A stretch of DNA of 63,384 bases, counting the filler, from Hyphochytrium catenoides (Eukaryota; Protista; Hyphochytriomycota), in the NCBI GenBank assembly GCA_900088475.1. It is 8 parts of 8 records of this genome, joined end to end, with 100 filler letters (N's around TTAATTAATTAA, not from the genome) between each part and the next. Parts side by side here need not be neighbours in the genome. Positions count along the whole stretch, not along the records: positions 1 to 23,649 come from FLMG01004455.1; 7 more parts are not named here. One strand, written 5' to 3'. The position numbers and the translations under genes are program-made. A model generated the notes under the pieces. That model was given only the letters and a program-made list of their open reading frames with translations, searched no databases and was not told where the DNA came from. Position 1 is the stretch's first letter, and each line of letters opens with the position of its first letter. Shown in pieces: positions 2,489 through 20,207 of the stretch.

Positions 2489-3745
2489 ATGAAGCTCTCA
2501 CATCTTCTTGCAGCCTTTGCATGCGCTGCCACTCTCCTCGTTGAGGCTCCTGAGCCTTGCATGGGCATGTTCTTCAGCCCCTACAAGGATGTCACGGTGA
2601 ACATGGACTGGAACACCAACGTTATATCTACCGCGGTCCGAGGGTCAAGAGAGACGTTGCTCCCCGTGTTATCCCAAAGCGGCTTGGACACAGTGACCTG
2701 GGCTTTCGCTACTGGCGTCTGTGGCAGTGAGACATGGGGCGGCATAGCCCCTGATGCCCTTGCGTCGTCCAACATCCAGGCGTGGGCTGCGGCTGGGAAG
2801 AAGTACATCATCTCCACCGGCGGTGCCGCAGGATCATTCAAATGTCCGACAGACGCGGCATTCCTGAAGTTCATTGAGAGGTATCACTCCTCTGGCCTCG
2901 TAGGGATCGACTTTGATATCGAAGGAGGCGTCAGTCAACAAGATATTCAAGACCTTGTCCAGCGTATCAAAGCTGCACGAGCGCGCTATCCTGATCTCAG
3001 GTTCAGCTTTACTCTCGCCACGCTGGGAGGAAATAGCTCCCCTAACTTGGGCACCCTTGGCGTTATGGCTGTCAATGCAATCAAGGAGAACGGACTCACG
3101 GACATCGCCTTCGTCAATCTGATGGCTATGGACTATGGCTCTGCCAGCCCCAGCACGTGCATTGTAGAAAATGGCAAGTGCGAGATGGGGAAGTCTGCCG
3201 TACGAGCAGCGAAGAGCCTGCATGAGGACTTTGGCATACCCTACTCTCAGATTGAGGTCACGCCGATGATCGGGGGCAATGACTCTCCTGGCCAAACCTT
3301 CACCACTGGCGACGTGCAGACTCTCGCTAACTTTGCAAAGGAGGTTGGACTAGGAGGAATCCACTTGTGGTCGCTGGATCGTGACCGTGACTGCCCTCCA
3401 GGCAGCGCGTCACCCATATGCAACACCTATGGACAGGCAGGAACTCTAGGCTTTATTCAGGCCTTTCAAGCGAGCCTTAATGGAGGTGCCAACGACAAGC
3501 CACCATCTACCAAGCAACCATCTCCAGCGCCTGGGCCATCACCTTCATCAGCGCCAACCACCCCGACAATGACGCCTCCTCCGGCTCCAGCTCCAAGTGA
3601 TGGGAAGCCCACAGAAGAGTGTGCGAAGGCAGGATGCGCCAAGGGCTGTCTTTGGACTTACCCGACAGGAACGCAATGCTTCCAAGACTATCCGCGAGAA
3701 AGCTGCGAGCTCTATATGAAGTTTGGATACACCTGGTGCCCATGA
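2489..3745 (+). CDS. Secreted GH18 chitinase (PF-ChiA-like catalytic domain), Pro/Thr linker, C-terminal 6-Cys module; intronless, 418 aa
   Basis: Signal peptide MKLSHLLAAFACAATLL from ATG 2489 (ORF track starts at an upstream TTG); motifs FSPYKD, TWAFATG, ISTGGA, catalytic GIDFDIE (DxDxE), NLMAMDYG, TPMIGGND, HLWSLDRD. Confidence 0.9.
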   Translation: MKLSHLLAAFACAATLLVEAPEPCMGMFFSPYKDVTVNMDWNTNVISTAVRGSRETLLPVLSQSGLDTVTWAFATGVCGSETWGGIAPDALASSNIQAWAAAGKKYIISTGGAAGSFKCPTDAAFLKFIERYHSSGLVGIDFDIEGGVSQQDIQDLVQRIKAARARYPDLRFSFTLATLGGNSSPNLGTLGVMAVNAIKENGLTDIAFVNLMAMDYGSASPSTCIVENGKCEMGKSAVRAAKSLHEDFGIPYSQIEVTPMIGGNDSPGQTFTTGDVQTLANFAKEVGLGGIHLWSLDRDRDCPPGSASPICNTYGQAGTLGFIQAFQASLNGGANDKPPSTKQPSPAPGPSPSSAPTTPTMTPPPAPAPSDGKPTEECAKAGCAKGCLWTYPTGTQCFQDYPRESCELYMKFGYTWCP

Positions 3746-6340: not shown

Positions 6341-6859
6341 TGCTGCAGAATCATCAGCCTTCTTCGCCTTTCTTTGTCGCCATCGTTCCCTTCCTTAACC
6401 TTCTCCTGCTGATGCGCTTTTCTGTTTCCCTGGCAGAACAGACAAGATGCGCTGACTATGGGCCGAGGACAGCGGGCGGGGCTTAGGCTTGTCACTATGT
6501 CCTGGGTGCAGAGAAGCCACAGCCCGCCGTGACCTCTTGGTAGGACGGCAGGGATGATGATGACGGTCATCATCATCATCTTCAAGCGTGAGGAGACAGA
6601 AGAAGGAAGGAAAGGATCTGCTGGTGGATTTCTTAGCGAAGGATTGGATTCAGGAAGAGGGTTCCTCTTAAGGTCTCGCCGCGGTGGTCTTTGCGTGCTG
6701 TCAGCGTGCTGCAGATACCAAGCACGTAGCAGCTGAAACTTTCTTCTTCCTTTGGCTGTCATCAGGATCTTTGCCATGCAGCTCTTCCTGGTTGCAGAGA
6801 GGAAAGACGGCACTTCATGGCGAGTGTCTTGGTAGGACTTTGGGATCTGGAAAAGAAGA

Positions 6860-7220
6860 AAGACGGTGCTTTCTTCATGTTCGGACCAGGTTCTTGGATT
6901 GCAGATGGACTTCTTCGTCTCAGCGAAGGAAACTGTGCGTCATCAGGACCGCAGCCGCGGTGTTAAGGCAAAGGCGAGCTTTCATCTGGCGCGTCCAGGT
7001 GATGTCAAGAGTAGAGCCATCAGCCCTTGTTGATGATCTCTCGCTGGATAGTATGTACATTGTCCAAGGATATTGTCCTTGCAATGTGGCGGATGATCTG
7101 GCGACATCATGCTTCGGACAACGCATTGAGCCTGCTGATCCTTTGTGCTTTATAGATGGCGGCCGCGGGCTGGTTGATTGTGGCCGCGGGCTGGTTGATT
7201 GTGGCTCGGCCGTGATCATC
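6860..7220 (-). pseudogene. Decayed ORF of unknown origin with an internal 21-bp duplication
   Basis: Reads DDHGRATINQPAATINQPAAAIYKAQRISRLNALSEA*CRQIIRHIARTISLDNVHTIQREIINKG*WLYS*... with in-frame TGA/TAA stops. Confidence 0.3.
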
Positions 7221-7633
7221 ATCACTTGCTCGCTAGTCTTTGTGCTACTTTCCATTTGGATCTTCTTCCTGCTGCATCTCTTTCTCCGGCGATGTCACTC
7301 CTTGCCACTGGTGCCTCAGGATCTTCTAGAAAGGAAGAACTAGCTACCTCTTCTAGAGCAATCCATCGACTAAGCTCCTGCCCCGCCCTGACTGCTTGCA
7401 CTTGAACTTGCCTTTTGCCCATCAGAGCTCTTTAATCCTCTATCCCTTCTCGACGTCTACAGAGCTTGACTCAGTTGTTGACAGGTATATGCTATGGCGT
7501 TTTTTCTCGCGTTCTTACGGCCTGCCTGTTGCTTGCCGTCTCTCTCTGTCGGACGGAGAGCTGGGACTCTCTCTGCCCAGTTCCTGGTGAGCCTCAGGTC
7601 AGAGGAGCCCAACAGCAAGCAGCTAAGCCATCA

Positions 7634-7648
7634 TCACTTCTCAATTTC
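7634..7648 (+). promoter_or_regulatory. Oomycete-type Inr+FPR core promoter upstream of the kissper-GH26-DPBB gene
   Basis: TCACTTCTCAATTTC matches YCAYTYBNNNWTTTY, about 130 nt upstream of ATG 7776. Confidence 0.6.
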
Positions 7649-7775
7649 ATTGAGATTTAGCAGGTCGACAATCGACAAGCGAGGCAAGACACCTTGTCCA
7701 GCATCATTTACCAGCCAACCATAGCAGCAAGCCACATCGACTAGGCAGAAGCACGGCAGTCTGCAGCATCGCCCC

Positions 7776-9284
7776 ATGAATATCAAAGAGTTGCTTCTCG
7801 TTGCGGCTCTCGTTGCCACTTCGGCATCGTCTGCCTTTGCTACCCGAGACCAACCAGGAGGAGCTCGTGGCGGCTTTAGGCATCGACAACTTCTCGAGGA
7901 CTGCTATGGACCGTGCTCTAGTCACGATGACTGCAGCGGTCAGCTAGCCTGCATGGGCGGCGTCTGCAACGACGATCCTGACATGGGAACCCACATATGC
8001 AAGCCCTCACCACCCTCACCAACTGGGGCGCCAAGTCCTTCTCAACCTCCGTCTCCAGGTCCTGTCACCAAGAAGGAAGAGCTCATCCGCTTCTTGAAGA
8101 CTGGACTGGGTAACCACATCATCTCTGGTCAGCATAACAAGCTCAATGCTGACCCTCTGAGCTATACAAGGCGTATCACGGAGGTCACGGGCAAACATCC
8201 TGGCTTGTGGGGCGGAGACTTCCTCTTTGATGGCGATGACAACCGCCAGCGCATGATTGACGAAGCTATCCGTCAGTGGAAAGCTGGGTCTCTCGTGGCT
8301 CTGACTTGGCACACTTGCCCTCCTACCATGGGCGACCGGTGCCAGTGGGACGGTGATGTCAACGGTAGCCATCTCGATGATGATGAGTGGCGTGAGCTAG
8401 TCAAGGACGGAGGTCGGCTAAACAAGGCGTGGAAACAACGTTTGGACCTCATCGTTCCGTACCTGAGACAGCTTGAAAAGGCCGGAGTCATCCCAATCTT
8501 CAGACCTATCCACGAAATGAATGACGACTGGGCCTGGTGGGGCGGTCGCCCTGGACCCAGCGGCAGTCGGCGCCTCTATGAGATCACTTACGACTATCTG
8601 GTGGGCGTGCATGGATTCAAGAACATGGTCTGGACGTGGAATGTCAAGGACAAGAACACGTGGAACATCCAGGAGTACTTCCCAGGATCCAAGTACATGG
8701 ATGTTGTCTCCTTGGACGTGTGGATGCAAAAGTACCCGACGGACGAGGACTATCAAAAGCTGCTCTCCTTGGCCGGGGACAAGCCTATCGCTCTCGCAGA
8801 GGTCGGGCACTTCCCAACCACCAGCGTGCTCCAAGCGCAACCAAAGTGGACCTGGTTCATGCTCTGGTCTGAGTTCCTTGACCCTCTCTCTGATGAAGAG
8901 ATCAGCGCAGTCTATCATCAACCTCGCATCTGGTCCCGTGGGGACTTCAAGATCTCTTCTTCACGCAGGACCCTCCGCCGTCTGGCGGAGTACTCAGGGG
9001 ATGCCACGTACTACTATGTAGGCCTAGGAGCCTGTGGCTGGGATAACACTGACGATGAGTACGTGGCGGCGCTGAACGGCGCGCAGTTCGGAGATGTGCC
9101 TGGATCCTCTGAGTGGTGTGGCAAGACAGTCACGGTCACGGGTCCCACGGGCACAGTTGACGTTAGGATTGTGGACAAGTGCCCTGGATGCAGCTATGGT
9201 GACCTAGACCTCAGTCCAGCAGCTTTCCAGGCCATCGCTGGGGACCTTGACCTCGGCCGTGTCCGTATCACTTGGCATGACTGA
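7776..9284 (+). CDS. Secreted multidomain protein: kissper-like Cys module + Pro linker + GH26 beta-mannanase-type domain + C-terminal double-psi beta-barrel (RlpA/expansin/barwin-like); intronless, 502 aa
   Basis: Signal peptide; CYGPC..DCSGQLAC.GG.CNDDPDMGTHIC (7902-8000); GH26 motifs SGQH, LTWH, FRPIHEMN (acid/base Glu), WWG, YFPG..YMDVVSLD, IALAEVG (nucleophile Glu), WFMLW; DPBB GDATYY..GLGACG..VAAL..CGK..IVDKCPGC..DLDLSPAAF..GRV.ITW (8991-9281). Confidence 0.9.
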   Translation: MNIKELLLVAALVATSASSAFATRDQPGGARGGFRHRQLLEDCYGPCSSHDDCSGQLACMGGVCNDDPDMGTHICKPSPPSPTGAPSPSQPPSPGPVTKKEELIRFLKTGLGNHIISGQHNKLNADPLSYTRRITEVTGKHPGLWGGDFLFDGDDNRQRMIDEAIRQWKAGSLVALTWHTCPPTMGDRCQWDGDVNGSHLDDDEWRELVKDGGRLNKAWKQRLDLIVPYLRQLEKAGVIPIFRPIHEMNDDWAWWGGRPGPSGSRRLYEITYDYLVGVHGFKNMVWTWNVKDKNTWNIQEYFPGSKYMDVVSLDVWMQKYPTDEDYQKLLSLAGDKPIALAEVGHFPTTSVLQAQPKWTWFMLWSEFLDPLSDEEISAVYHQPRIWSRGDFKISSSRRTLRRLAEYSGDATYYYVGLGACGWDNTDDEYVAALNGAQFGDVPGSSEWCGKTVTVTGPTGTVDVRIVDKCPGCSYGDLDLSPAAFQAIAGDLDLGRVRITWHD

Positions 9285-9499
9285 GCATTAGTTATAAGGA
9301 TGACGGGCAAAGCCGCCCAATCGGCGATTTCGGGGAGAGAGAAAGATTCTTCGTAGAGGCAGGGAGAGGGCTGTGCAGCGTGGCTCTAGGGCTGTCGTTG
9401 GGAGACACTCTGAACAGCCAGTTAGCTGGTGATGAGCTCTAAGAAGCAAAGTATTAACAATGATTGAATGGAAACCACTACCTCGTGTGCTAGGTTATT

Positions 9500-10562: not shown

Positions 10563-10615
<53 letters not shown>

Positions 10616-10707
10616 TTCTCTCTCTCTCCCTCTTTCTTTCTCTCTCTCTCTCTTTCTCTCTCTGTCTCCCTGTCACACCGCTCTCTCTTCAGCTTTCAAG
10701 GGAAGCG

Positions 10708-11010
10708 ATGGAGGTGGAAGGTGACTCTGCGGCTGAGCTAGCAACGCCTTGGTGGCAGTTCCAAGGTGGAGGAGGCGAGGGAGACAGAGGAGGAGGAGAG
10801 GTTCCCTACTTTTCTCTTTTTGTCCAAGCCTCTTCTCTCCTCCTTTTGGCTGCTGGCTTTGGCATCCTCTTCGCAGCTTACTTCCAGGTACAGTCTTCTT
10901 CTTCTCATCTCTTCTTTCTCTCTTCTTTCTCTCTCTCCCTCTCTGACGTTTCTACCTTTCTCTCTCCTTCTCTCACCCTCTATCTCACTCTCTTTCCCTT
11001 TCTCTCTTTT

Positions 11011-11057
<47 letters not shown>

Positions 11058-11513
11058 GTTCACTTTCTTCCTCTCGCTCTTTCTTCTTTCTCTCTTTCTC
11101 TGTCTCTCTCACTATGTGTCTAACCTTCTCCTGCCTGTCATTAGCCTCTGGTGGTGATGGAGCTGTTGGTCAAGCGCCACCCTCGCGTCCTCTGGAAGAG
11201 CAGAACAAAGAGAAGAGTTCTCGCCCTGACGATCGACGACGCTCCTAATATGCACAAGGGCAAGAAGGGAGAGAGGGTGACGGAAGCAATCCTTGATGTT
11301 CTCAAGGAGCACGGCGTGCGCTGCACTTTCTTCATCATCTCCTCGCATGTGAGAAGAGAGAGAAAAGAAGAAAGTGACACAGCCGAGCACCGTGACGGCC
11401 TTCTCGTTAGAATGCTGAAGGAAGGCCATGAGCTAGGTGAAGACTGCTTGTCCAGCCCTTGCTTACTCTCTTTCTCTTGAGGATCGTCCCTCTCCGTTCA
11501 GATTTGTGCTTTG

Positions 11514-11551
<38 letters not shown>

Positions 11552-12488
11552 CTCGTCTCTTCCTCTCTCTCTCCCTTTTCCGCTCCCTCTCTCCAGCCCC
11601 AAATTTCTCTCTCGATCTTTCTTACTCTCTTTCATTGCTTCCTCCGCCTCTCTCACTCTCTGTTACCTGGCCTCCGTATCTCACCATCCCGTCTCTCTTT
11701 GTCTCTCTCTCTTTCTAGGGAACCATTTGACGGAAGACTTTCCTAGCATTCGCTACTCTCCTGCCGATTTTGAGAGACATCTTCTGTCTTGTGACCAGCT
11801 CCTCTCAGAAATCTCTGAAGTGTCTGACACTTCCTTTCCTCTCGCCTCTGGAGGAAAGAAGTGGCTGCGGCCTGGATCAGGTCTTGTTTCTCTTGAGTAC
11901 CTTTCTCTTTCTCTGTCTCTTTGCTTGCCAGCCATTGTGACTGTCGCCGTTTTTGTCTTTATCATCCTCTCTTTTGCTCTTTCTCTCTTTCCCTACCACT
12001 TGGGCCACACAGGCACTTCGTTGCGTCTTTTCTGTCTGTCCGTGGGATTCTCTCTCTTTCAAATAGTTTATGTTTTTACCTAGTCTTTCCTTGCTTCTAT
12101 TCCTTCTCCCTCTGAAGTCATCACGATACAGCGTCCCTGACGCTTTCACTCCTCTGGAGCTTGGATGATACTCTCTATTCCACTTTCCTTCTCTCCTTGT
12201 TCCCTTCTTTCTCTTTCTCTCTTTCTCTCTCTCTCTCTCTTTTTCTCTGTGCCTCTCACTCTCGCTCTCTCTTTGGTGTTTCTCTCCCTCTCCTGTGTGC
12301 CTCTCACTCGTCTCTCTCCCTCTCCTCTGTGCCTCCCACTCTCGCTCTATCTTTGCGTGTCTCTCTCCCTGTTCTCTCTCTCTCCCTCTCCATCTGCTCT
12401 ACATGCCGTCCTTTCGTCCAGGATGGTTCACCCAGGAGATGCTCCGGATCGCCGATCGACACAGCTATCGCATCGTTCTCGGGAATGN

Positions 12489-12537
<49 letters not shown>

Positions 12538-12670
12538 TGGGAAAGAAGAAGATCGAGATGCCCTGCGTTGGAAGAAGCGCTGGACAGGCAAGGATCTGTG
12601 TATGCCCGTTTGCCCCTTGTCTGTTTTATCATCGTCTCTCTCTTTCTCTCTCTCTTTCTCTCTCTCTCTT

Positions 12671-12701
<31 letters not shown>

Positions 12702-12936
12702 CTCTCTCCCCCCCCACCACGAAACCAAAGTGCATCACCTTTATGTCTTTATGACCATATATGTCATTCGCTGTCCGTGTCCTCTCCCTCATCTATCCCT
12801 TGCTCTTTCTTCAGGTTCTGTGATCATTCTCCATGACCGGCCTTGGACCGTAGGAGTTCTCAGGCGATGCCTACCAGAGCTCTGCAAGAAATATGAGTTC
12901 CTCACCCTCAGCGAGCTCGCAGCGCTGGATGACTGA
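10708..12936 (+). CDS. CE4/NodB polysaccharide (chitin/chitooligosaccharide) deacetylase with N-terminal membrane anchor; at least 5 exons
   Basis: Exons ~10708-10887, 11146-11437, 11719-11880, 12422-12486, 12815-12936 with GT..AG ends give LALTIDDAP, ILDVLKEHGVRCTFF, GHELGNH, WLRPGSGWF, GSVIILHDRPWT, FLTLSEL; one internal exon probably missing near the N at 12488. Confidence 0.85.
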
Positions 12937-13676: not shown

Positions 13677-14974
13677 CTAAAGTGCCTCTCTCCACTTTTG
13701 AGCGGTGGTCCAGGTAACGAAGACAAAGGTGACACAGCCAATGATGACCGTGGAATAGTCTAAGACTTTATCATGCAAGGTCGGCTTCGGATTCAGCTTC
13801 TGATAGAAAAGCGGGGGATAAATGAAGCTCAAGGGCACTGTGGAGAGACAAGGCAAGGAGATTCAAGCATCAGCATGAGGGAGGGAGATATGAAGAGAGA
13901 TCGGGCGGTAAAAGGCCTGGATCAGTCTTCCCATTGGGATTCCGAACAGCAAGAAGAGTCTAGGAGGGAGGACCTCTTGGGGAAAGCATGGACAGCTAAG
14001 ACATTCCAATCAAAGAAAGGTCAGAACGAGAGGTTGCTGGCCAAGCATGAGGGAGGCAGCTGGACCTTGACCTGGTTCAAAGTAGACAGGAGAGAATACC
14101 GTTGAGGACCAATGCACTGGAGTTTAGAGAGAGAGAGAGAGAGACGAGTAAATGGGGATGGGGAGAGAGAGGGAGAGAGAGAGAGAGAGGGAGGCTTACC
14201 GCAGCAGAAAGCTCCCACTACTGCCACGAAGAAGTCTAGCTTTGACTGTCCCAAGTAGGATATCAAGACTGTCACAACGACAATGACCGCCCTTAAGATA
14301 TTCTTCTGTCCTTTCATTCCGCTCCTTTGAGAAGGGAAGAGCAAAGAGTCTTCTACTATCTTTATCGCAGGGAAGAGGAAAAGAGGGTAAGAGAGCATCT
14401 GCGCGAGGGCGTAGCCTAGCTGCACAGACACAGCCCAAGGCCCAGATGGCAGGTTCGTGGTAGAGACTGTGTGGATGGAGGAGCCAAAGGCCGCGTACAC
14501 CGTGGCAGCAAAGAAAGTGTAGAAGAGAAGAAGAACGAAGACGGTGTATGACAGCAGCGCAGGGAACTTCTTCTCTCTTTCCCTGTTCAAGGAGGCTTGG
14601 GTTGGGATCACGAGACCGATGCCCTCGAACGTAAACACTGAGAGAGAGAGAGAGAGAGAGAGAGAAAAGAGCAGAGAGATGGGAGAAAATCGTCAGCCAT
14701 GAGAGGTCATAGAGATTGGAGGCTCGTCGGAGATAGCAGAGCGGAGGACGGAGTGAACGTCACACTCTCAAAAAGAAAGACGATGTTACAGGGCTGAGGA
14801 AGAGAAGAGAAGAGAGAGAGAGAAGAGAGAAAAAGAAAGTGGGAGAAGGATCTGTAGCATGATTGTTGCATAGCCATTTTAGAAAGTATGAGCCAGGCAA
14901 CAAAAGCTCTCTCATGGGTATATTCCGAGAGAGTCTCTATATGACCTTTCATCAGAAGGAAAAAGGATGAATGA

Positions 14975-15010
<36 letters not shown>

Positions 15011-15710
15011 AAAGAGAAAGAGGGCTGGTACCTGCAGTTCCTATGAAGGTTGTATAGTCGGACGTGTTAAAAAGTGTGCACTCCTGAGGTCCGTTGAGGG
15101 CGAGGAGATAGACAGAGTAGCCCAGGACAGAGGCCAGGCCGTAGAGGATGAAGAGATCCGCCAGCAGATTTGTCACAGAAAAATAGCTGCACGCCATGAA
15201 GGCGAAAGAAAGAAGAAAGAGCCAAGTGGTTGGAGAGAAGGTGAGAGAATGCGGAGATGCAGCAATGAGGGACACATCGGAAGGGATACAAAGTAAGAGA
15301 GAGGGGCTAGTGAGCAGAGGGAGTGTCCGTAGGAGAGAGGGAGACTTATGAGGGAGAGAGCCAGAGAGGAAGAGAGAAGAAAGTAAAATAAGAGAGAGAG
15401 GCAGCAGAAAATAGAGAGAGAGTGGAAGAGAACGAAGGAGGATGAGGTGAAAGAGAGCGATAGGCTTTTTCAAAAAGAGTGAATGGCATGGGGAGAGAGA
15501 GAGAGAGAACCAACGTAGTGGAACTACGGACCTGATGTGCCTGACCCAGCTGAGGGGAATGTACAGTGCGCTCTGCCCTAATATCAAGGTTGTAAGAGAG
15601 AGATCCAGTCCAAAGTGATGGAGCACGGACTGAAGGTTCGTGGCTACGAATATTGTGTATGTACAGCAGAAGCCTCCCTGCATTAGGATGATGGACACCT
15701 GGAGAGGGAA

Positions 15711-15743
<33 letters not shown>

Positions 15744-17339
15744 CAGAGAGCGAGAAGGGAGAGAGAGAGAAGTAGTGAGGGTGAGGGAGAGAGAGGTGAG
15801 AGAGAAGGGCATGGTGAGGAAGAGAGAGAGATATACGAGAGAGGCCTGCGCCAGCTTCAAGGAGAGAAGAAGGAATCATCCTTCACCGTTAGCGAGAGAG
15901 ATGTGGAGAGGATAAAAGAGCAAGAGAACCTGTACGATTCTTCTCCCCCATTCTCCGTAAGCCTTGCTCCCAATGTAACCGTACGAGCCGCCGACGAGCT
16001 TTCTGCATTCTAAAAGCCTGGAGGAAATAAAGAGATCAGGAGAGAGATTTATATAAGGAAGAAGGAGAGAGACGCTCCCCTTCTCTCTCGGAGAGAAAGA
16101 ATAGGAGGCAGAAAGGGGAAGAGAGAGAGAGAGAACGCAAGCGAGAGAGAAACAGGAGACGATAGACCTATCGAGAGCAAGAAATTGCTCTGACCTTAAC
16201 ATCGCAAAGAGAGTGAGCGCGGCGACAGCAATGAGGAGAAGGGGAGAGAAGATGATTCCTCCATTCATGAAGCCCTCCGGGAGAAAGAGAACGCCTGTTC
16301 CTACGAATGCCTTCAGAAGAGCGAGAAGCGCGTGTCCCAGCGTTGCTGTCTTGGAAGATTCGTCTCCTCCCTCCTGGAGAAGGAGCGGTGACGATTCAGT
16401 AGAGCCTTCAGCTATCAGTCTTGCTTGAGATCTACGCGAGAGGGAGAGAGAGAGAGAGAGAAAAGAGACAGAGAGAGAGAAAGAGCGCGCGAGAGAGAGA
16501 GAATAGACAGGAAGAGCATGCCGAAGCGAGAGACGGGAGAGACACAGAATGATACGTGAGGCCAGGCCTGGAAGAGAAAAGAGTCGAGGACCGTTCAGGA
16601 CGCGGTCAGACATCGTGAAGAGTGAGCCGGAAAGCAGCAGTCACGGTCAAAGGAAGCAGCAGCAAAGGATAAAGAGAAAGAGCTAGACACAGTGAAAGGT
16701 AGAGGAGTGGCGGATAAGCGAACACGAAAATGAGCTTTGGAAAGAAGGAAGGAAGGGAAAAAGAGAGAGAGAGAGAGAGAGAGAGAGGCATGAAGCGGCC
16801 ACATACCCCACTGGTTGGAGCTTGGGAGGGTGCAGCAGATAGTTGACCCGCTCCTCAGGCGTGAAGCCTTCATACTCATCAGAATCTAAGGAAAAAGGTC
16901 GTGAGAGACACAAGCATCCTCTGAACATAGAAAGAGACCAGAAACAGAAGAGCTCCAGAAAGAGAGAGAAAGAGAGAGAGGAAGAGAGAGTCCGAGAACC
17001 ACAGCGAGATATAGACACAAAGAGACAGACAGACAGAGACAAAGCCGTGGACANNNNNNNNNNNNNNNNNNNNNNNNNNNNNNNNNNNNNNNNNNNNNAG
17101 AGAGAGAGAGAGAGAAGAGAGAGAAGAGAGAGAAGAGAGAGCCGGACAGGCAGACATGCAGGCAGATTGAGGAGGAAGAATCCTTCCCTACCTGGTGTGA
17201 AGAGAGCGCCAACATATGGGTCATAGACTCTCTCAAGCTTGCCTAGGAGAGAAGGATGATGTACGGACCGTTGATCGCTGTGCTGGCCTGCCCGAGACGC
17301 CAGGGGCTCTGTTCTCTGGGTCTCTCTCCTCTCACTCAT
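13677..17339 (-). CDS. AAAP family (AVT3/AVT4-like) vacuolar amino-acid transporter, multi-exon
   Basis: Spliced exons give LLKAFVGTGVLFLPEGF.NGG, GFCCTY.IFV, LSWVRHISYFS, FIGTAVFTFEGIGLVIP, QMLSYPLFLFPA, VVGAFCCVPLSFIYPPLFY; stop TAG 13677; start uncertain. Confidence 0.9.
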
Positions 17340-18219
17340 CTTGCAGTTCCAAGGCAGACACAGGGAAAGAGATAGAGAGAACGAACCGAGAGACTAGGGA
17401 GGGGAAGAAGTTCTGATGAATAAGAAACAGAGAGAGATGGAAGAGTGAGAGAGAGAGAGAAACTTCAATGGAGAGAGAAAGAGAGTGCCACAGGGACCCA
17501 AAAAGCTTCACAATGGCAGTAGTGGCTCTCTCTTTGTTGCTCTGGTAGATCCGTGCTATTGATGACTGATGACCTCACCGAGCACTAGTCTCTCCTGCTT
17601 GAGGGCTTGTCTCTTCTTGTCTCTCGTCTCTTGTCTGTTCTCTCTTCCCTTTTGCCCTTGCTCCCTTTCTCCCTTCTCTTTCCTCTCTCCCTCTGTCTGT
17701 CTCTCTCTCTCTCTCTCTGTCTGTTCTCTCTCTCTCTCTGTTTCTCTCTCTTTTTTTCTCTCTCTTTTTTTCTCTCTCTCTGCTTTCTCTCTCTCTCTCT
17801 GTTCCTCTTTCTGGGTTACCCTCTCTCTCTGTTTCTCTCTCCCTCTGGTACTCTGTCTCTCTGTCTCTCTCTCTCTGTTTCTTTCTTTCTCTCTCTCTCT
17901 CTCTCTCCCTCTCTGCATTGACAACCGCATCAAGCCATCAATCACAGAGACCGACAAGACATAAATTACATCAAAGTGCTCTGATCAAGGACTAGTACAG
18001 AGGTATTAGGGATAGAAGGTTGTCGTTATCATGCTCGTGCCGTCGTTATCCACATTATAATGGCACATCGCCTGTATACATTCTCACATCGTCCTACGCA
18101 CAGAGACCTAGCTGGTAGAATCCGGGATCTGAATGACTACTGAGGCTTAATATAGCGGTTACCGGCTCTCATTGTTGAAGATGGATCAGGAGGATTGACC
18201 TCAAACCGGCGAGGTCTCA

Positions 18220-19136: not shown

Positions 19137-20207
19137 TCATGATGCTGCGGCAGGGGATTCCTCTCCTCTCTCCTCCGCGATGATTGTACCGCTCTCCCCA
19201 GATCCAACACACTCTCTCTCTTCACTTGTTGCTGGCTTTCTCCCTCTTCTTAGCGCTCTCATGATTCTTCTTCGGTTATCTCCTCTCCCGAAAGAGTGAG
19301 GATCACTTGGGAGATAGGGGAGAAGAGAAGTTATCTGGCGAGGCGTAGACTGAAGAGAGAGAGATAACAAGAGCTCTGCCATCTCTTCATCTTCGCTCTC
19401 TCTCCTAGACGCAGGGAAAGGTAGCCGAGAAGAGAGAGACGAGAGAGATTCCGTGGGAGAGAAAGCGTTGTCTCTCTTGTCGAAGAGAGAGCTCTGCCTC
19501 TGGCATGAGTGGGAGAGAGACGATGTAACTGAAGACAAGCCTAAGAGAGCTTCAGCAGCCTCCACTTCCTCCTTTAGGTGTTGAGGGGGCGATGTCTCTC
19601 TCTCCAGGTTGTGCGGCTGATGGTGGTCTCTTCTCTCTCTCTCACCTTCAGACTCTTCTGCTTGGTCACTCCCGGCCTCTTTTTCTCGCTGCGATGTAGA
19701 GATGGTGTCCCTAGAAGTGGGACTAATGAGATGAAAACAGTGGTCCTGGGGCTGAGAGAGAGAGAGAGAAGCACGGTCTTTCTCTCTCTCTTCCTCTTTG
19801 ATCTCCTCGTCTTGATCCTTCTCTTCTACCTGGAACGATAAAGGAGGACGGGAGAGAGAAGCACGGTCTTTCTCTCTCTCTTCCTTTTTGCCCTCCTCGT
19901 CTTGATCCTTCTCTTCTACCTGGAAGGATAAAAGAGGAGGACCAGGAGAGACGAAGAGATCCTTTTTGGACGAGAGAGACTGTGACGCTTTGAGCTCTCT
20001 TCCTTGTAGAGGCGTGCCTGTTCTCTCTTCTCTTGCTTGTGTTATGATATTCCCGGCGGGAGAGAGAGAAGCAACAATTAGCCTGTCCAATTCAGTCACG
20101 AGCTCTTCCACGAGAGGGTCCCTCTCTCTCTCCAGCGCCGGTCCCATCTCTTTCTCTTCGGAAGAGAGAAGGTCAGGCCTAATCAAAGCAGAAGCAGGAG
20201 ACGCCAT
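19137..20207 (-). CDS. Hypothetical low-complexity Ser/Glu-rich protein (356 aa), possibly with a further exon at 18278-18505
   Basis: Long ATG-started ORF, internal duplication LSFQVEEKDQDEE..EEREKDRASLS x2, two helical EAAEALLGLS/EMAELLLSLS motifs. Confidence 0.45.
   Translation of the reverse strand: MASPASALIRPDLLSSEEKEMGPALERERDPLVEELVTELDRLIVASLSPAGNIITQAREERTGTPLQGRELKASQSLSSKKDLFVSPGPPLLSFQVEEKDQDEEGKKEEREKDRASLSRPPLSFQVEEKDQDEEIKEEEREKDRASLSLSQPQDHCFHLISPTSRDTISTSQREKEAGSDQAEESEGERERRDHHQPHNLERETSPPQHLKEEVEAAEALLGLSSVTSSLSHSCQRQSSLFDKRDNAFSPTESLSSLSSRLPFPASRRESEDEEMAELLLSLSLQSTPRQITSLLPYLPSDPHSFGRGDNRRRIMRALRRGRKPATSEERECVGSGESGTIIAEERGEESPAAAS

Follow-up and report, generated by a model that had tools for sequence, protein, structure and literature searches.

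What is the protein encoded at positions 7776 to 9284 of the Hyphochytrium catenoides sequence analysed here, in which a cysteine-rich module of plant type, a glycoside hydrolase domain of bacterial type and a double-psi beta-barrel (DPBB) follow one another in a single open reading frame (ORF), and does the gene belong to the genome in which it is found? The window, i.e., the whole stretch of DNA that was analysed, comprises 63,384 nucleotides (nt) of assembly GCA_900088475.1, with parts of eight records joined end to end. An initial annotation of this DNA had proposed a three-part architecture, namely a six-Cys kissper module like that of plant kiwellins, a glycoside hydrolase family 26 (GH26) mannanase and a barrel, and this architecture is borne out by the ORF, by Pfam and by matches to solved structures. 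We consider it probable that a diploid, intron-rich eukaryotic microbe carries this gene as its own in the nucleus, without introns and kept up by selection, and that the product is a modular glycoside hydrolase which the cell secretes. The parts of the ORF are as follows.

7776..7844, plus strand: signal-peptide-like N-terminus (residues 1-23), with a charged start, a hydrophobic core and A-x-A before T23
7845..7901, plus strand: short basic, Gly-rich stretch (residues 24-42) between the signal peptide and the first Cys, recognised from the sequence
7902..8000, plus strand: kissper-type six-Cys cystine-knot module (residues 43-75), from its match to 4PMK
8001..8066, plus strand: Pro/Ser-rich linker (residues 76-97), recognised from the sequence and aligning with the Pro-rich segment that follows kissper in kiwellins
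8067..8927, plus strand: GH26 catalytic domain (residues 98-384), from Pfam PF02156 and matches to 6Q75 and 3ZM8
codon 8514-8516, plus strand: E247 of the HEMN motif, the acid/base, from alignment to solved GH26 structures
codon 8799-8801, plus strand: E342 of the AEVG motif, the nucleophile, from the same alignment
8928..8981, plus strand: basic Ser/Arg-rich inter-domain linker with two RR pairs (residues 385-402), recognised from the sequence
8982..9284, plus strand: single DPBB of RlpA-like/loosenin (expansin domain 1) type (residues 403-502 and the stop), from matches to 9MS5 and 9CE9 and an AlphaFold2 (AF2) model

Three modules in one reading frame

The ORF is single, uninterrupted and intronless. 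Its frame is open from stop to stop from position 7725, and the first in-frame ATG, at 7776, starts a protein of 502 aa in which the signal-peptide-like N-terminus is followed by the 33-aa six-Cys module, the Pro/Ser linker, GH26, a second linker and the C-terminal DPBB. Six of the Cys residues (43, 47, 53, 59, 64 and 75) lie in the module, two in GH26 and four in the barrel (420, 448, 469 and 472). The N-terminus suggests that the protein is secreted, and residues 24-42 are possibly a pro-region. An unlabelled kissper-kiwellin, P0127, has an N-terminus similar to residues 1-23 and a stretch loosely similar to residues 24-42, the latter being the sole likeness found for that stretch. Since dibasic pairs occur in both linkers, proteolytic release of the modules is conceivable, speculative as this is. 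AF2 models were made for each module separately.

Membership of the catalytic domain in GH26 is clear from the curated Pfam threshold (PF02156, residues 98-384, E 3.5e-39, 135.4 bits vs. a cut-off of 20.2). More than 30 solved GH26 chains are matched by the protein, the best being Muricauda GH26A (6Q75; E 7.7e-61, near full length with few gaps), with the Podospora GH26-CBM35 (3ZM8; E 1.9e-34) and then many bacterial mannanases behind it. Both motifs in which we place the catalytic Glu of the family, HEMN with the acid/base (E247) and AEVG with the nucleophile (E342), are preserved and align with those of 6Q75 and 3ZM8. When the whole protein was searched against 5.8 billion proteins, the best GH26 relatives were actinobacterial, with 50-57% identity, and most of them bore ricin-B or F5/8 type C modules as fusion partners; none of these GH26 matches covered more than 75% of the query, and none carried a DPBB or kissper. 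In a tree of 73 GH26 domains, which included one other eukaryotic row (a springtail), the query has a long branch of 0.75 changes per column and arises from a polytomy in a mainly actinobacterial clade that also takes in Deinococcus, Sorangium falling just outside it; the springtail row lies elsewhere, and the query has no eukaryotic sister. A bacterial ancestry of the domain is supported by these comparisons, and the initial view of an actinobacterial-type GH26 with both catalytic Glu agrees with the tree and with the intact motifs.

The six-Cys module had been placed at 7902-8000 and aligned with kiwifruit kissper, ungapped and with about 21 of 33 identities. The position is exact (C43 to C75), and the alignment is confirmed against solved structures: with module and linker as query, residues 43-75 align ungapped with kiwifruit kiwellin 4PMK (E 6.3e-12), with all six Cys aligned and 21 of 33 residues identical, and Act d 5 (4X9U) is matched at E 4.4e-10. 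A phmmer search with residues 40-80 against 1.84 billion representative proteins gave 33 matches at E<=1e-3 (best 8e-16, a likeness far past chance level), most of them land-plant kissper-kiwellins as judged by KWL1 matches in Pfam and by source names. In the kissper alignment (A1; 34 rows, ungapped) the six Cys, one Gly, one Leu and one Thr are invariant and D-D-P is kept in at least 90% of rows; residues 43-75 have the kissper spacing together with the G-Q-L and D-D-P...G-T-H-x-C motifs. The AF2 model made from this alignment has a mean pLDDT of 77, and its best fold match among PDB entries in Foldseek is Act d 5 4X9U (TMq 0.61, 58% identity, E 7.6e-3, not significant alone), with spider-toxin and squash-inhibitor cystine knots trailing at E>=0.6. 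No Foldseek match to this model reached E<=0.001; the ranking agrees with the sequence match. Judged by its sequence, the module is a genuine kissper homologue.

Its identity to the modules of kissper-kiwellins is 58-61%. The closest single relative is P0127, a kissper-kiwellin fragment (61% over the aligned module) with a leader peptide like that of the query and a gene that contains a short intron with ~50% GC; chytrid DUF7107 repeat proteins are more distant matches. In the kissper tree, which is weak at 46 columns, the module grouped with Selaginella modules and three unlabelled sequences, across a 94/95 split from angiosperm-type modules. A plant origin of the module is plausible on these grounds; kissper also has a bacterial carrier (P0124).

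We know of no biological role for kissper, a conserved plant module. According to a survey of the kiwellin family, kissper is found only inside land-plant Kwl1 kiwellins, and one chytrid kiwellin was noted (PMC9813671). Several other contexts were seen among the matches. The bacterial protein P0124 carries kissper as a tandem pair whose members show 43-45% identity to the query module (alignment A4). Its locus (L002, the same as L024) is a metagenome contig of 2905 bp with a GC fraction of 0.62, which is taken as bacterial because it is GC-rich and adjoins T2SS-M (type II secretion) and prepilin-peptidase genes. The module pair is nested among angiosperm-type modules in the small 46-column tree, which hints at a transfer from plant to bacterium. 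In celery (Apium graveolens, P0121/P0157) and carrot (Daucus carota, P0160), proteins annotated as G-type lectin S-receptor-like kinases have an ectodomain of two kissper modules, without a lectin domain; this receptor-kinase context is absent from the family survey. Three Selaginella moellendorffii proteins (P0123, P0126 and P0129) have one or two kissper-like modules without a kiwellin domain and share an L-A-C-M motif variant with the query module. A metagenome scan with the narrow kissper alignment gave 25 loci, of which 24 are AT-rich plant DNA, nearly all with an adjacent kiwellin barrel, and the 25th is the bacterial contig of P0124. Two further candidates for bacterial kissper proteins, P0143 and P0148, were rejected as plant kiwellin first exons with junk leaders.

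The C-terminal barrel falls below the Pfam cut-off for DPBB_1 (26.4 vs. 28.8 bits). Among solved structures it matches a Streptomyces expansin (9MS5, E 1.2e-17), the fungal loosenin PcaLOOL12 (9CE9, E 3.6e-17), a Clavibacter expansin (E 1e-10), a Bacillus expansin (E 1e-5) and, last, maize kiwellin 6TI2 (E 0.0096). A search of proteins 276-878 aa long gave as its closest relatives RlpA-like DPBB proteins of eukaryotes, from fungi and amoebozoans, with 47-62% identity (up to 62% for unlabelled relatives, 51% for Catenaria), including proteins of Catenaria, Coemansia, Geotrichum, Allomyces, Kwoniella and Planoprotostelium along with unlabelled sequences; several are membrane-anchored fungal proteins, one lies on a compact yeast-like contig, and none in this size range carries GH26. 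In alignment A3, T411, G-L-G-A-C, C448, D467, C-P-G-C and L-D478 are conserved, with T411, D467 and D478 invariant, and the barrel thus has the Thr/Asp/Asp set of expansin domain 1; these three presumably correspond to T12, D71 and D82 of BsEXLX1. The AF2 model of the barrel has a mean pLDDT of 91.5, with the first ~10 residues of the C-terminal model low (block mean 52). In Foldseek it matches expansin domain 1, loosenins and a Streptomyces papain inhibitor at 34-45% identity, the loosenin and expansin domain 1 matches being at 38-45% (45% for 9MS5), and 9CE9, a single-DPBB loosenin, is matched with TMt 0.81. Expansin matches cover only residues ~8-100 of 200-aa expansins, and the protein has no CBM63-type domain 2, because it ends two residues past the last barrel strand (W500; stop at 9282). 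The barrel is loosenin-like, neither kiwellin-like nor a full expansin, which bears out the expansin/loosenin type originally assigned to it.

The label of kiwellin-like chimera, by contrast, does not hold, since the protein has no match to KWL1 (PF24300) in Pfam even at E<=1 and only its N-terminal module ties it to the kiwellins. When the barrel was compared with five kiwellins by phmmer, one of the five gave a match, marginal and partial; in tblastn, the barrel and the kiwellin genes of plants were 28-31% identical along 67-91 aa. The kinship of barrel and kiwellin is one at the superfamily level only, and a kiwellin-type DPBB with its N-terminal extension is not found. Because the relatives of the barrel are fungal and amoebozoan RlpA-like/loosenin proteins and not kiwellins, the protein is not a kiwellin. 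Comparison of the predicted structure with kiwellins, which had been suggested as a check, ranks them (21-26% identity) below loosenins and expansin domain 1. A kiwellin split by insertion of GH26 was also considered and rejected because the barrel is not of kiwellin type. We found no paper in the literature that links kiwellin with GH26.

A native gene and its surroundings

GC content at third codon positions (GC3) is 0.63 in the focal gene, 0.65 in an exon of a transporter gene and 0.59 in a neighbouring GH18 gene. Actinobacterial genes are expected at far higher GC3. Two DNA runs from different samples give even depth over the gene and its flanks, ~27x and ~400x, respectively. A contig of run X1 covers 6819-9142 and takes in 957 nt of non-coding sequence ahead of the gene together with the greater part of the ORF. 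At 9113-9293 there are two contigs, one for each allele. The runs diverge from the window by ~1%. Six of the eight listed ORF differences are synonymous and two are non-synonymous (G55S and T399A), and the 1.5-kb ORF has no indels vs. 11 in the 4.2 kb of flanks. This 6:2 ratio, the absence of indels from the ORF and the two alleles indicate a heterozygous diploid locus under purifying selection. A contaminant or chimeric contig had been named as a threat to the original claim; even depth, the bridging contig and the alleles speak against this. The gene is native to the eukaryotic genome, and it is very unlikely to stem from contamination or a chimeric join. About 570 nt upstream of it, at 7161-7205, a 21-bp unit is repeated in tandem (2.1 copies); the run X1 allele has one copy fewer.

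Two other genes were recognised around it.

2489..3745, plus strand: secreted bacterial-type GH18 encoded without introns (Pfam GH18), with a Pro-rich linker and then a Cys-rich module at the C-terminus
14201..16340, minus strand: amino-acid transporter gene (Aa_trans) with at least 5 exons and GT-AG introns (Pfam on two exons)

The transporter matches Pfam profile positions 2-51 and 203-357 on two exons and has at least 4 GT-AG introns of ~190-400 nt with CT-rich tracts; its N-terminal motif may resemble that of fungal Avt3. Because this gene bears introns, the locus is taken to be eukaryotic nuclear DNA. The GH18 gene lies 4 kb upstream of the focal gene on the same strand. Its catalytic part is ~60% identical to Burkholderiales GH18, over its full length it is related, at 52-57% identity, to one EukProt entry and to eukaryote-like proteins without a label, and its C-terminal Cys-rich module of ~40 aa has no Pfam match. 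Together with the focal gene, it suggests a genome that repeatedly adds modules of its own to bacterial catalytic domains. The window thus mixes an intron-rich transporter gene with two intronless genes for secreted carbohydrate-active enzymes (CAZymes), both with catalytic domains of bacterial type. No land-plant orthologue was found for any of the three genes searched.

The window has 50.5% GC and about one gene per 6-8 kb. Perfect (CT/AG)n runs of at least 6 units make up 4.7% of its bases and lie in introns and intergenic DNA; the (CT)n/(AG)n microsatellites are unusually dense, e.g., at 957-1115, 10566-11110, 12206-12708 and 17675-17914, and the contigs that carry relatives are without such (CT)n richness. 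Oomycete genes have few, short introns. The description of the genome as oomycete-like is therefore not supported, given the transporter introns and the (CT/AG)n content. The proteins of the window are missing from a collection of 15 billion proteins, and atlas look-alikes of three neighbouring gene products pointed to no consistent taxon. A tentative guess, at low confidence, is an osmotrophic protist, fungus-like or amoeboid. An Rfam scan of the window detected no tRNA, and its only matches were hairpin artefacts below threshold in AG/TC repeats; many of these, at an inverted pair of AG and TC runs (12489-12708), are matches to plant-miRNA hairpins. An ORF of 356 aa with an ATG at 19137-20207 (minus strand) has no Pfam match and a very low protein-atlas recognition score; it coincides in part with a 90-bp tandem repeat at 19762-19938 and probably does not represent a real gene. 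A run of N at ~17040-17090, just upstream of the transporter, marks this piece as a scaffold assembled from more than one contig.

The architecture and its closest known systems

Searches were made from three entry points, i.e., the whole protein, kissper at any length and the barrel in multidomain proteins. No protein was found by any of them that has two of kissper, GH26 and this barrel, save for kissper with kiwellin, and a metagenome scan with the whole protein gave no relative. The statement that no protein of this architecture has been described is in keeping with these results, which cover very large protein databases as well as the metagenome scan, and the architecture appears to be unique so far. 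As a whole, the protein is a variant of the familiar modular wall-degrading CAZymes, in which horizontal transfer and domain accretion are combined, rather than a new kind of system.

With the land-plant kissper-kiwellins (Kwl1 subfamily; Act d 5, 4PMK/4X9U), the protein shares a module of ~35 aa at the N-terminus with the same six-Cys spacing, the motif C-N-D-D-P-x-x-G-T-H-I-C, a Pro-rich segment after kissper, and secretion, which for the query is predicted. Unlike them, it has neither the KWL1 barrel nor its extension, carries 290 aa of GH26 after the linker, has a barrel from a different DPBB family and belongs to a host that is not evidently a land plant. The actinobacterial GH26 proteins, automatically annotated as mannan endo-1,4-beta-mannosidases, have the same pair of catalytic Glu, fall in the same tree clade and are 50-57% identical, but the query lies in a eukaryotic genome, has eukaryotic base composition and a long branch, and carries kissper and a DPBB where they carry ricin-B or F5/8 type C modules. 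Muricauda sp. GH26A, unlike the modular query, is a periplasmic single-domain bacterial enzyme (PMC9860051).

The barrel shares Thr/Asp/Asp with loosenins and RlpA-like single DPBBs (PcaLOOL12, 9CE9) and with expansin domain 1 (9MS5, BsEXLX1). Like the loosenins it is without CBM63, and it is 38-45% identical to the solved members; loosenins stand alone, whereas the barrel here is a C-terminal appendage of a glycoside hydrolase. Fusions of two-domain expansins with GH5, CBM1, CBM2 and CBM32 have been described (10.1101/637728). The GH5-expansins of Xanthomonadaceae, the GH5-CBM2-expansin CelA of Clavibacter and the CBM1-expansin swollenins follow the same logic as the query, which differs in having GH26, a one-domain barrel and, in addition, kissper.

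Proposed function and competing readings

The following scheme would account for the protein. A retaining GH26 catalytic core may have been gained from bacteria by horizontal transfer, long enough ago for it to adopt the base composition of the host, and it would most probably cleave beta-1,4-mannan. A kissper-type knot, joined to its N-terminus through the Pro/Ser linker, could be a small and stable device for binding or targeting outside the cell, in the position that CBM1 takes in fungal enzymes; that kissper forms the ectodomain of the Apiaceae receptor kinases supports an extracellular binding role. The loosenin-type DPBB at the C-terminus would bind or loosen polysaccharide networks and thereby give the hydrolase access. 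Loosenins are reported to weaken cellulose networks and to bind chitin (PMC9888185). The layout, with signal peptide, knot, linker, catalytic domain, linker and non-lytic barrel, corresponds to the standard plan of secreted wall-degrading enzymes.

Several observations weigh against this scheme. The signal peptide at residues 1-23 was judged by eye from the sequence, no RNA run is listed, the gene being known here from DNA runs, and the polytomy in the GH26 tree leaves no specific donor supported. The GH26 family also holds beta-1,3-xylanases and lichenases, and kissper is without the flat aromatic face of CBM1. The one kissper activity reported is ion-channel formation in lipid bilayers; this pore formation, like release by proteolysis, is reported solely for the peptide from kiwifruit (cited in PMC9813671). 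On both of the latter counts, the role of kissper as a binding module is a guess. Muricauda GH26A, the closest solved enzyme, is inactive on commercial mannans and manno-oligosaccharides, with a loop that blocks its +2 subsite, and is active on natural mannan from a diatom bloom (PMC9860051). Because of this inactivity on commercial mannans, endo-mannanase activity is not to be assumed; beta-1,4-mannan is the likeliest substrate, not an established one. The literature search found no characterised GH26 reported from the nearest actinobacterial genera.

Four other explanations were weighed against the proposed secreted wall-degrading hydrolase. The enzyme could be morphogenetic, remodelling the mannan, glucomannan or chitin-glucan matrix of its own wall and not foreign walls. 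This is suggested by the chitin binding of loosenin-like proteins and their effect on mycelial density, from which a part in fungal wall processing has been proposed (PMC9888185), by the membrane anchors of several DPBB relatives and by the chitinase-like secreted GH18 gene 4 kb upstream. We regard it as rather unlikely: the catalytic domains of both CAZymes look like recently acquired bacterial types and not like conserved eukaryotic housekeeping enzymes, and the architecture is absent from the relatives sampled, which would be unusual for a core morphogenetic function. We think it unlikely, too, that the protein is a mimic or decoy, i.e., a derivative of a kissper-kiwellin with GH26 inserted, acting as an effector against the kiwellin defence of plants, with hydrolysis secondary. 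The order of kissper and DPBB does echo a kiwellin, the module is as close to those of kissper-kiwellins as given above, with a leader like that of P0127, and tblastn found a weak likeness between barrel and kiwellins. Yet KWL1 is unmatched, phmmer gave its one marginal match, the barrel has its closer relatives among fungal RlpA-like DPBBs and has no kiwellin-type extension at its N-terminus, the catalytic residues are preserved with the whole gene under purifying selection, and a plant host would have to be assumed.

The two remaining explanations concern the gene itself. The ORF might look intact and yet be a relic, silent or in decay, which would be consistent with the lack of a listed RNA run and of known orthologues, but this is quite improbable in view of the excess of synonymous changes, the 11 indels confined to the flanks, and the conservation of all catalytic and structural residues. 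That a bacterial GH26 gene was misjoined to eukaryotic sequence, or entered as a contaminant, is barely credible. The closest relatives of the catalytic domain are all bacterial, the gene has no introns, and the scaffold does have an N gap, though elsewhere; against this stand a GC3 equal to that of the intron-bearing neighbour, even depth in two samples, the bridging contig, the heterozygous alleles, and the fact that two of the three modules in the one ORF are of eukaryotic type.

The gene is a clean case of a eukaryote adding accessory modules of its own type to a catalytic domain taken from bacteria, and with it the hydrolase-expansin fusions on record come to include GH26 and loosenin barrels of one domain. 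As a natural fusion, it is of possible interest to enzyme design for mannan-rich biomass. The main interest of the architecture lies in the portability that it suggests for kissper. In this genome, which does not look like a plant's, the module is coupled to an enzyme, and elsewhere it occurs in Apiaceae kinases, in Selaginella repeats and in one bacterium. This gene, P0127 with its similar leader and the chytrid kiwellin of PMC9813671 may represent a kissper lineage outside plants. It is possible, and we put it forward tentatively, that kissper, rather than being an invention of land plants specific to kiwellins, is a mobile extracellular cystine knot which has passed between these plants and microbes and was recruited here as a targeting or host-mimicking module of a wall-degrading enzyme. 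If so, this protein would offer a first handle on what kissper binds.

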